A DNA stretch of 63,758 nt, filler included, from Klebsormidium nitens (taxonomy: Eukaryota; Plantae; Klebsormidiophyceae), in NCBI GenBank assembly GCA_000708835.1. It is 6 parts of 6 records of this genome, joined end to end, with 100 filler letters (N's around TTAATTAATTAA, not from the genome) between each part and the next. Parts side by side here need not be neighbours in the genome. Positions count along the whole stretch, not along the records: positions 62,355 to 63,758 come from DF237185.1; 5 more parts are not named here. One strand, given 5' to 3'. A program made the position numbers and the translations under genes. How positions within the stretch are numbered: the stretch's first letter is position 1; every line of letters begins with the position of its first letter. The notes under the pieces are model-generated. The model was given only the letters and a program-made list of their open reading frames with translations. It was not told the DNA's origin and ran no database searches. Positions 60,956 to 63,758 of the stretch are shown here, piece by piece.

Positions 60956-62355
60956 GTCGGCCGGTATTGGCCACACCGCTTGAGCGGTTGTAGAGTGTAC
61001 GATACTGAACGGAACCCGCACAGCTCCTGAACTTTGTCTTTCACACTCAGCTCGACGCCAGAATTGCATGGTTCACGGGATGTCTCTGCCATCAGTTGGG
61101 GCATCCATTCGGTCGTGTTTGCTGGGCCGCCGGGCCGGGCAACGCGGCCAGACGGTATGTTGCGCAGACAGGTCGGAAGTTAGGCGGCTTGGCTATGATT
61201 CCAGATCGAGTCCCCCCTCGAAGTCGGCCTTCGGAGCTTCAATCTCTTACCTCTCACGACTGTCTGGGACCGGACTCAACCGCAGTGTCTTATTGAATGA
61301 TCGAGGCGCCACTCGATGCCAGGAAAGCACTATGACTTGAGTATAGTGACCTAAATCCAGGCTACATAACGTGCATATGTGTGCCAGACATAATATCAAA
61401 TGCACGAGTCATGGCCGCTCCTAACAAGTTCAGGGCCCGGGGAGTGCAACGGCGGCCGGGCGGCCCAATATGATCGCGTGCTGGCACCAAACTTGAAATC
61501 AGCCTCTCATGCGCGACTCGAAAACACAATCGGATATTGTCGTCGATCGTTGTGCTTCTTCATCATGTACGTCAGCTTGTATAACGGCCATGCCATGATT
61601 GTGCGCGGCCGCATGTACATGCCATGATGGCCGCGCTGCATGATAGCATATATATTCGTAAATCTGCAATTATTGCGGACTCATCGACTATATAACGCGT
61701 GAGCCCCAACTTACCAAATGATCGCGGATGCAAAATACAATTAGACCTTTTATATGGATATATGCATGGTGACTCTTGCGTGCACAAGATATGTGCAGTG
61801 TGCACTGCACCCGCGCCGCGGCGCGCGCGCCCCATGCATGGCTGGGTACCGGCCTGGCCAGCCGGCCGCGGCACCAATAAGTGGCGACGTACGAACGCCG
61901 GGCGATCGGGGCGGCCGCCCGCGCCACCTATACTATATTACATAGGTGGTAAGGTATACTCTACTAGTATATTATCATAGTATGCTTTGAAACATATTGT
62001 ATTCATGTCGCGGTGGCCGCCCGGGGGCTTTTCGTCAAAGTAAATTGAGGCTGATCATGATCGAGCTGCAGGAAGGCATTTTTAAGTACGTTGAACTTAG
62101 TTAATTCCGGAAAGAGAATGCCTCATTTGATAGCGATCGGACGGTACCGTACAAATATGCCGGCGTACCGCGTATGTCTACTGGATCATTGATCGTTCAA
62201 GGGTTCGGTTCAAATGATTGGCTGGGCGGCGCCTGCCTGCAAGCATTCATGATGNNNNNNNNNNNNNNNNNNNNNNNNNNNNNNNNNNNNNNNNNNNNTT
62301 AATTAATTAANNNNNNNNNNNNNNNNNNNNNNNNNNNNNNNNNNNNNNNNNNNNA

Positions 62356-62923
62356 GCATCAGCGCACTTTGCCAAAGTGAGATTTATTGTCGACAGGTGA
62401 GAAGTCGCCCTTTCAAATGCTCGTATAGGGCTTGAATAATTTGTGTACATTTGAGGCCTGTTTGCAGTAAGCGTTGTTGCAGAGCCTTTCGTCATCCAAC
62501 GTTTGTGTGTGCATTGGAACACATTTGCAGTTGCACTGGTCTGAGAGTTGTGATCCTTGGATCAGAATGTGTACATTGATTTTGATTCTACAATTAAAGG
62601 CCGATGTACACCTTTCCATGCATAGGTTCCACTTTGCAAAGGCTGGATCCGAAGTGCACAAGTGCGGCCCCTCCAATTGTCCGGAGAGCTACTGCGGACT
62701 ACACTGGGTGAACACGTCGGCCGTGGAGTCGGTCAACAGCTTTCTCAAGGGCTTTAGAAGTCTGGGGTGGTATTCAGGGCTTGACAACCTCATGGTGATA
62801 CTGCCTCTGCTCCTCGGCGGCTATAACAGCTCTTTAAGACGAGTCGACGACGCCAAGATTAGCATCGCGATTGGATCGGCCGTTTGGGTGGCTGGGATTC
62901 GAAGAAGACTTTTGCTAGGCTAG
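62356..62923 (+). mobile_element. KDZ transposase copy 4, last intron and terminal exon
   Basis: Acceptor at 62625, then FHFAKAGSEVHKCGP...WVNTSAVESVNSFLKGFRSLGWY...VDDAK, homologous to copies 2 and 3. Confidence 0.9.
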
Positions 62924-62960
62924 CAAGGTGCGAAAAAACCTTGTAAGCTGTTTTGTGTTG

Positions 62961-63436
62961 TGATACAAACGTTGATACAAAAATCAAGGACTGTATCAGG
63001 CTTCCGAAGGCATATTGAAGGGGAGATTGAAAAGACGAGAGCGCTTGCATGGTTGTCAATGATAGGCAACCGCGATCTTCTTTCACTCTCATTTGCATGT
63101 GCCGCAGCGAAGAGGGTTCCGATGGTGCTGAAATGAGTGATACAGCTGATACAACCTTCTTGGCATTTGTGTCTCGCTCTCGTAACAATCCAATTTCAAT
63201 TCAAAAAACAAACTCTACACCTTTATGATGTATCTTGTATCACCTGTATCAGCCCCTCACCGTCACAAATTGTAAGTAACCACCACCAATATGCGCTTTA
63301 AATGATTGATGAACAAAAAATGGCTCACAAATCCAACTAACTTGCATCGAGGCGGCGCTTTGCTTGTACAAATGGGCCTTTAGATGCTGATACACGCCCG
63401 ACCAAAAGGTCAAATTTGTTGTATCAGGTTGTATCA
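62961..63436. promoter_or_regulatory. Origin-like region with a different iteron (TGATACA/TGTATCA)
   Basis: TGATACA at 62961, 62973, 63138, 63147, 63388. TGTATCA at 62992, 63236, 63245, 63420, 63430. The central inverted pair encloses ~75 bp of AT-rich DNA. Function is inferred. Confidence 0.6.
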
Positions 63437-63758
63437 GGCCTTTTTGTCGCTCGCTTGTGCCACTTCCGCCTCTAACTCTACCTCGGTCTTCAAGCGAATG
63501 CCAAAGAAGCCTCTTCCTCGCTTCTTTTTATCCAGCGTTCTGATCAACGGAGCGTTTCCCTCCCCTGGAAGCTTTTGCAAGAATCCCTTCAAACACATTG
63601 CTCTTGTCAACGACCTATCGTCTGCCAAGCTCGTGTCATGCCCGCCGGCACACAAGAAACTTCTGAAGGCGTCAACAAAATCGGACTTGGCAACGCTGAA
63701 ATCCGATGGCTCCCCAATCTTGCAGGCCTCGTCAATAAAGACTTGAAGTTTGTCGTTC
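63434..63758 (-). CDS. C-terminus of a divergent D5/SF3 primase-helicase (winged-helix region); continues off the right edge
   Basis: Translated by hand from 63757: NDKLQVFIDEACKIGEPSDFSVAKSDFVDAFRSFL...RGRGFFGIRLK. This fits the D5 C-terminal pattern (nD.l..Fi.e.c ... g..G.rLK). Confidence 0.75.
   Translation of the reverse strand, partial: NDKLQVFIDEACKIGEPSDFSVAKSDFVDAFRSFLCAGGHDTSLADDRSLTRAMCLKGFLQKLPGEGNAPLIRTLDKKKRGRGFFGIRLKTEVELEAEVAQASDKKA

Follow-up and report, generated by a model that had tools for sequence, protein, structure and literature searches.

A repeat array between two converging genes

The DNA analysed here (the window) is a 63,758-nt stretch from the nuclear genome of the streptophyte alga Klebsormidium nitens. 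The piece examined, positions 62355-63758 (from DF237185.1), holds the ends of two converging genes and, between their stop codons, a 510-bp spacer (62924-63433) that we propose as a replication origin. Neither reading frame is broken inside the piece. On the plus strand lies the terminal exon of a transposase gene that resembles the KDZ (Kyakuja-Dileera-Zisupton) family (62626-62923, with its TAG stop codon at 62921-62923). On the minus strand, a frame that is cut by the piece edge runs to a TGA at 63436-63434, and this segment (63434-63758) comprises the last 107 codons and the stop codon of a P4-family primase-helicase of the D5_N/superfamily 3 (SF3) type, for which we use the name D5-1. 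Its peptide ends ...RGRGFFGIRLKTEVELEAEVAQASDKKA; the terminus ...RGRGFFGIRLK, which an earlier reading of this DNA from its sequence alone (the sequence-only reading) had given for this unit, was found on the minus strand of the piece.

The 7-bp motif TGATACA, or TGTATCA on the opposite strand, is present in ten exact copies, all of them in 62961-63436, whereas 5000 dinucleotide-preserving shuffles of the piece gave a mean of 0.12 copies and a maximum of 3. These repeats (iterons) start at 62961, 62973, 63138, 63147 and 63388 on the plus strand and, as TGTATCA, at 62992, 63236, 63245, 63420 and 63430 for the minus strand, and a further minus-strand copy with one mismatch occupies 63229-63235. 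Nine of the ten exact copies lie within the spacer, and the tenth overlaps the D5 stop codon. They form a module beside the KDZ stop codon (62961-62998; two direct copies and one inverted), a central module (63138-63251; two direct copies, then the near copy and two exact inverted copies) and a module beside the D5 stop codon (63388-63436; one direct and two inverted copies), whose last copy contains the D5 stop codon as its TGA. With the near copy counted, the central gap (63154-63228) is 75 nt long and has a GC content of 36 %; the arms of the central module (63138-63154 and 63235-63251) are 80 nt apart and 94 % complementary. The description given in the sequence-only reading, ten exact copies over ~480 bp in an inverted geometry with a spacing of ~75 bp, is therefore confirmed in the piece, the measured span being 476 bp.

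The same motif was found in nine further independent loci (L001-L007, L010 and L014; L008 repeats L007), each with a D5 gene, a spacer and then a KDZ terminal exon on the opposite strand. Across these 8-24-kb loci, the TGATACA arrays lie in the spacer and almost nowhere else. Compared with the window, the D5 C-termini of the nine loci are 39-88 % identical and the KDZ terminal exons 64-86 %. In most loci the offsets of the iterons from the first copy are nearly constant (~1, 10 and 42; ~177-189, +9 and +7; and, in the same count, ~272-284, +9 and +9, followed by ~426-439, +19 and +11), and the module on the side of the KDZ stop codon keeps the same spacing in the majority of TGATACA-class relatives, where some copies carry one mismatch. 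When eight spacers were aligned, the iteron columns were 87-96 % identical to the window, whereas the other columns were 29-35 % identical in divergent copies, indicating that the repeats are under selection and that the rest of the spacer is unconstrained. The TGA stop codon of D5 coincides with the start of the first iteron copy in six loci (the window, L003, L004, L006, L010 and L014).

Individual copies depart from this arrangement. The entire spacer of L003 is tandemly duplicated (L003:1958-3032), which brings the number of exact motif copies to 20. In L005, the K. nitens copy, the one-base variant TGATGCA takes the place of the motif four times within the central module (L005:14352-14470), and this variant is also present in three places of L007 (L007:4304-4500).

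Repeat classes and their exchange together with D5-1

Profile searches with the KDZ terminal exon recovered ~60 distinct exons. Loci with other repeats were found through look-ups in other KDZ clades and through one metagenome scan, which yielded a single locus, L009. The KDZ terminal exon of the window is 68 % identical to that of L009 and 53 % identical to that of L011. In L009 and L013, 11-13 copies of CCTACC (extended form ACCTACC) form inverted sets around an 84-nt gap with 30 % GC, and in L011 a gap of 86 nt (34 % GC) separates three GACCAAAA-type copies from three copies in inverted orientation. The D5 of a further K. nitens locus, L012, is 59-74 % identical to that of L011, and L012:7040-7210 retains only mutated remains of GACCAAAA-class repeats, at the expected places. 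The GACCAAAA class of L011 is evidently what the sequence-only reading had termed the GACCAGAA type; exact GACCAGAA arrays, in that wording, were not found in any fetched locus. In the nine loci measured, which represent the three classes, the gap between the inverted sets is 71-86 nt long and AT-rich, with 27-36 % GC compared with 41-47 % for the whole spacer.

The iteron class matched the D5-1 class in all 14 loci (10 TGATACA, 2 ACCTACC and 2 GACCAAAA, one of the last being decayed). Iteron class thus followed the D5-type gene in each of these loci; it did not follow KDZ. The D5-1 proteins of the ACCTACC and GACCAAAA classes are 24-38 % identical to those of the TGATACA class, and the specificity groups that had been suggested from two iteron types extend to at least three classes, each with a deeply different D5-1.

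The discordance with KDZ was examined in L013, of the ACCTACC class, and L014, of the TGATACA class. The KDZ open reading frames (ORFs) of these two loci are 78-83 % identical over their full length, the CxC4 part included, whereas the L014 KDZ protein is 58-76 % identical to any TGATACA-class KDZ, lower than its identity to L013. The first ~110 nt of the KDZ-side element terminus, beginning GGGCCTACCAA, are nearly identical in the two loci, and the accessory ORFs beyond D5 show 57-69 % identity. Between the two D5-1 proteins, by comparison, identity is 24 % over the helicase and C-terminal domain and 38 % over the Prim-Pol domain. The DNA similarity ends at the KDZ stop codon and resumes at a small ORF that diverges from D5-1; these break points indicate that the exchanged 3.4 kb consists of exactly the spacer, D5-1 and its upstream region. 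This exchanged piece holds no other conserved ORF.

Judged by its identities to relatives, the window is itself a mosaic, produced by a second exchange independent of that between L013 and L014. Positions 62356-62925, the intron region included, are 83.5 % identical in DNA to L007, and the DNA from ~62955 to the end is 80-95 % identical to L001, whereas the reverse comparisons gave 60-70 %; the junction falls within ~30 nt after the KDZ stop codon. Taken together, the L013/L014 pair and the window mosaic indicate that the motif travels with D5-1 and not with KDZ or another backbone gene. The reassortment of KDZ and replicon modules that the sequence-only reading had anticipated is seen in both cases, and its suggestion that D5 rather than KDZ reads the iterons is supported by the comparison, since the class agreed with D5-1 in every locus and KDZ proteins of 78-83 % identity accompany different motifs.

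The D5-1 primase-helicase and its C-terminal domain

Relatives identify the minus-strand ORF as the C-terminal end of a P4-family primase-helicase. With the 107-residue D5-1 fragment as a query, only 11 proteins were matched among 1.84 billion representatives (HMMER). The fragment is 94 % identical to P0001 and 59 % identical to the C-terminus of P0004, a full-length relative of 949 aa with Prim-Pol and D5_N domains and a putative SF3 helicase region. The NCBIfam model TIGR01613 (P4-family primase C-terminal region) was passed by P0004 (139.3 bits) and by the D5 of L013 (131.8 bits; cut-off 108.7). D5_N (PF08706), a domain that lies outside the window piece, scored 32-52 bits in P0001, P0004, P0007 and the L013 D5 (cut-off 22.4), and Prim-Pol (PF09250) scored 54-57 bits in P0004 and the L013 D5 (cut-off 22.8). 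The SF3 helicase core (PF19263) reached 19-27 bits, below its cut-off of 27.6; nearly invariant columns of the G..GK type in the helicase part are common to D5-1 relatives and bacterial relatives.

A word search with the P0004 helicase core delineated a clade of ~20 proteins with 53-81 % identity, drawn from Klebsormidium nitens (KFL_ proteins), two JGI metagenomes and Logan runs. The closest relatives beyond this Klebsormidium clade are bacterial P4-family primases, at ~30 % identity, and the sole solved relative by sequence is the viral PrimPol C962R (E = 1e-7, in the helicase part). The window fragments of both genes, used alone, matched no Pfam family and no PDB sequence, and PHROGs yielded only weak matches to 'DNA primase' C-termini. 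For the C-terminal domain, the ratio of nonsynonymous to synonymous substitution rates (dN/dS) between the window and L001 was 0.14.

A fold model was built on P0003, a natural C-terminal fragment that is 53 % identical to the window domain, with 72 aligned relatives (predicted local distance difference test score, pLDDT, 86; predicted template modelling score, pTM, 0.71). An earlier model of the window's own fragment, from 19 sequences, was poor (pLDDT 55). The P0003 model contains, in order, a helix, a beta-hairpin, a helix, a short helix, a helix and two wing strands, the last strand reading GFFGLRL. Its top fold matches were the winged-helix domains of RFX, 1dp7 (probability 0.99) and 8zjr (0.97), and the likeness of the modelled domain to the RFX DNA-binding domain is one of fold only; the next match was the C-terminal part of the viral PrimPol C962R (probability 0.6-0.9). 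Searched against PDB sequences, the domain profile gave no match. The model thus supports a winged helix for the C-terminal domain.

Across 11 TGATACA-class members, 17 of the 107 domain positions are invariant, and the last helix (A53 and K57) and the wing strand (R80, G83, F84, F85, R88, L89 and T91) account for nine of them, a pattern that fits an unchanged DNA target. Conservation of the C-terminal domain within this class does not exceed that of the helicase core (37-53 % versus 53-81 %). Between classes, the C-terminal parts of D5 could not be aligned with BLAST; the ends of the domain are nevertheless kept in all classes, with the start N-D-x-x-x-x-F...C and the finish G-x-x-G-[IV]-x-L-[KR]. 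Because the proteins of all classes belong to the P4 family and have the same pattern at the start and end of the domain, their C-termini are best regarded as diverged homologues, and the statement in the sequence-only reading that the C-terminus of this unit was unrelated to the others was too strong. The proposed covariation of iterons with the winged-helix domain stands in a broader form: the whole D5-1 gene and its upstream region co-vary with the iterons and the C-terminal domain alone is not singled out, while the fold itself comes from the predicted model of a relative.

A candidate replication origin within a transposon

We consider it probable that a replication cassette inside a large Klebsormidium KDZ-type DNA transposon has its cis-acting origin in the spacer, that the repeats are the sites of the cognate D5-1 protein and that the cassette is exchanged as a unit. 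The cassette would consist of the D5-1 gene, encoding Prim-Pol, D5_N, SF3 helicase and a C-terminal winged helix, together with the region upstream of this gene and the 0.4-0.55-kb spacer that follows its stop codon directly. D5-1 would bind the 7-bp repeats, most probably through its C-terminal domain. The inverted site sets flanking the 71-86-nt AT-rich stretch form a layout on which SF3 initiators load as two opposed rings and open the DNA. Priming would then fall to the Prim-Pol domain and copying of the element to host polymerases, and the outer modules would serve as auxiliary loading sites or in copy control. At least three specificity classes exist, and the cassette is swapped as a unit between transposon backbones. 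The enrichment of the motif, its conserved positions, its linkage to D5-1 and the co-exchange were observed and the fold is predicted, whereas protein binding, the domain that reads the sites, origin firing and any extrachromosomal replication are inferred.

Several observations weigh against this proposal. The stem-loop potential of the central module is ordinary (z = -1.6). The KDZ discordance rests on two exchange events, and because the exchanged unit is the whole D5-1 gene, the comparison does not single out the reading domain. The RFX fold matches have an E value of only ~0.02 (Foldseek) and a sequence identity of 8-13 %, and the solved origin-binding domain of P4 alpha was recovered neither by PDB sequence searches with the fragment and the domain profile (E up to 10) nor among the fold matches listed. 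The second terminus of the element lies beyond the fetched DNA, and the distance of the spacer from both termini is accordingly not proven. In addition, many copies are broken: in L001, D5-1 is split into three called ORFs and terminates earlier than the window frame, and the KDZ terminal exon contains one stop, as does that of L009; in L014, D5-1 is called as two overlapping ORFs; in L004 and L007, matches to the KDZ terminal exon are spread over two frames; and in L012, the annotated D5 is short and the repeats are decayed. Intact D5-1 frames of 925-1057 aa are present in P0004, P0012, P0016, P0017, P0019 and L013.

D5-1 might bind the repeats for a purpose other than initiation, namely tethering or partition, copy-number control or control of the converging transcripts. 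The location of the spacer between two 3' ends and the outer modules that abut both stop codons would suit such a role, but we regard it as unlikely, given that inverted sets surround an AT-rich gap of constant length in three classes, that no motif copies occur in the D5-1 upstream region and that repeats directly after a primase-helicase gene reproduce a known origin layout (PMC6092414, PMC4234260). Short direct and inverted repeats are also typical of transposase-binding regions, and one module abuts the KDZ stop codon, so the repeats could instead be sites of the KDZ transposase or another backbone protein, comparable to the sub-terminal repeats of CACTA-type elements. This explanation is very improbable, because L013 and L014 have unrelated motifs despite the identities of their KDZ proteins and accessory ORFs given above, and because a second D5-like gene of L013 is 69-73 % identical to its counterparts in the TGATACA-class loci L001 and L005. 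The KDZ-side terminus argues in the same direction: it was delimited in six loci by a sharp end with unrelated flanks (L010:1163, L003:8316, L001:17568, L007:10049, L013:4903 and L014:31), its beginning (GGGCCTACCAA, or GGGGCTACCAA in L007) is common to the TGATACA and ACCTACC classes, and its first 400 bp contain no copy of the motif.

We give least credence to the spacer being a small non-autonomous element or a recombination hot spot, or to its repeats being sites of a host factor. Taken over the whole spacer, the motifs form a rough palindrome, and exchange junctions fall at the spacer edge, but the position and spacing of the repeats are kept while the D5 C-terminal domain falls to 39-59 % identity, and the first copy overlaps the D5 stop codon in six loci. 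Host-factor sites would have to accommodate three different motifs at one place in one host genome; for the same reason, a GATA-type factor of the host was dropped as a candidate, the three motifs that occupy this place being unrelated.

Cassettes in which an initiator and an iteron origin have matched specificity are well established for bacterial plasmids, satellite phages and chromosomal islands. We found no description of such a cassette inside a eukaryotic cut-and-paste transposon, and a full-text literature search found no papers that link KDZ elements with a primase-helicase or an origin. The alpha protein of satellite phage P4 is a primase-helicase whose C-terminal winged-helix domain binds repeated origin sites. 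Like the P4 system (alpha, ori and crr), the candidate cassette is built on a protein of this family, as the relatives of the window protein pass the TIGR01613 model, but the identity to bacterial P4-family proteins is ~30 % and the N-terminal primase here is of the Prim-Pol type. In phage-inducible chromosomal islands (PICIs), the pri-rep genes are followed by an ori in which two iteron sets flank an AT-rich region (PMC6092414). The order of gene and putative origin and the iteron sets around an AT-rich stretch are the same in the loci described here; however, PICIs are bacterial, integrase-based islands, whereas the present array belongs to a KDZ transposon in the nuclear DNA of a streptophyte alga and has three modules of a 7-bp repeat, including two extra sets at the gene ends.

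The origin of the plasmid pRN1 is located just 3' of the gene for its Prim-Pol/SF3/winged-helix protein (PMC4234260). D5-1 has the domain order of this protein, ORF904 (Prim-Pol, SF3 helicase and winged helix), but the pRN1 origin is a conserved stem-loop without iterons, whereas here the repeats are conserved and no unusual stem-loop potential was detected. D5_N is also a feature of the D5 primase-helicases of large DNA viruses, such as C962R; the relationship is distant, however, and the nearest relatives outside Klebsormidium are bacterial. The loci showed neither a capsid gene nor any other hallmark gene of viruses, and no D5 is listed for Klebsormidium in a survey of eukaryotes for giant-virus genes (PMC5294986).

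It is possible, although we advance this tentatively, that the elements are transposon-plasmid hybrids, in which a cut-and-paste KDZ transposon would use its own iteron origin and a bacterial-type (P4/PICI-like) initiator to copy itself in the nucleus of the alga, with at least three incompatibility-like groups kept distinct by whole-cassette exchange. If the main proposal, an origin cassette with matched initiator, is true, the loci would offer a natural series of cognate protein and site pairs (three classes, one of them with many diverged members) for the study of DNA reading by winged helices in SF3 primase-helicases. They would also show that, in a close algal relative of land plants, replicon modules are swapped from one transposon backbone to another, and would bear on the trade of replication modules among transposons, plasmids and viruses.

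The backbone of these elements also contains a second, divergent D5-like gene, ~30 % identical to D5-1 (L005:1-6476, L006:1931-5232, L013:17651-20372 and L001:about 1-2771). The L013 copy is 43 % identical to that of L006, and its identity of 69-73 % to those of L005 and L001 places the gene in the conserved backbone. A reading of the upstream D5 copies of L005 and L006 as tandem elements was rejected, as these copies represent this conserved second paralogue. A tandem array of 103-113-bp units lies 3' of the second D5-like gene in L001 (L001:3334-4275, 9 copies) and L005 (L005:7053-7571, 4.6 copies), each unit containing the palindrome TGACGTCA and a doubled CGGACAC-type motif, and TGACGTCA/CGGACAC-type motifs recur without a scored tandem array in L013:17050-17700. 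This array may be a second cis site, and the pairing of gene and downstream array hints at a second replication module in each element. Terminal inverted repeats, sought inside L001, L005 and L013, were not found; an 11-mer with one mismatch at L013:20229 was rejected as a terminal repeat, being within chance expectation and in a position that would cut the second D5-like gene.

The plus-strand gene of the window is the end of a multi-exon gene encoding ~1100-1300 aa. In L002 and L013, KDZ (PF18758) scored 16.7-17.3 bits (cut-off 26.6) and CxC4 (PF18717) 18-23 bits (cut-off 26.9); weak CxC4 matches were also obtained in L012 and L014, and the window terminal exon alone gave no KDZ or CxC4 Pfam match. 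As in KDZ transposons, the weak matches to the two domains occur in the right order, the element is multi-copy and its terminus is sharp, but the Pfam scores are below the curated cut-offs. The designation KDZ-like is therefore reasonable on these domain matches but not proven. The setting is nuclear and eukaryotic, as confirmed by the neighbour of the element in L004, where a long terminal repeat (LTR) retrotransposon polyprotein (RVT_1, RNase H and rve) and a DNA-methylase fragment adjoin it (L004:1-3100).

Upstream of its terminal exon, the KDZ gene of the window comprises the end of the penultimate exon (62355-62396, plus strand), which is cut by the piece edge and reads ...HFAKVRFIVD in frame 2, and a 229-nt GT..AG intron of phase 2 (62397-62625; donor 62397-98, acceptor 62624-25). 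The two exons were searched separately and never joined. The same penultimate exon end is present in L009 and other relatives at 66-89 % identity, and L009, like other relatives, has an intron at the matching place. Rfam and tRNA scans of the piece were empty. Within the intron, TGTGTACATT/TGTGTGCATT occurs three times at intervals of 62-64 nt (62442-62577).

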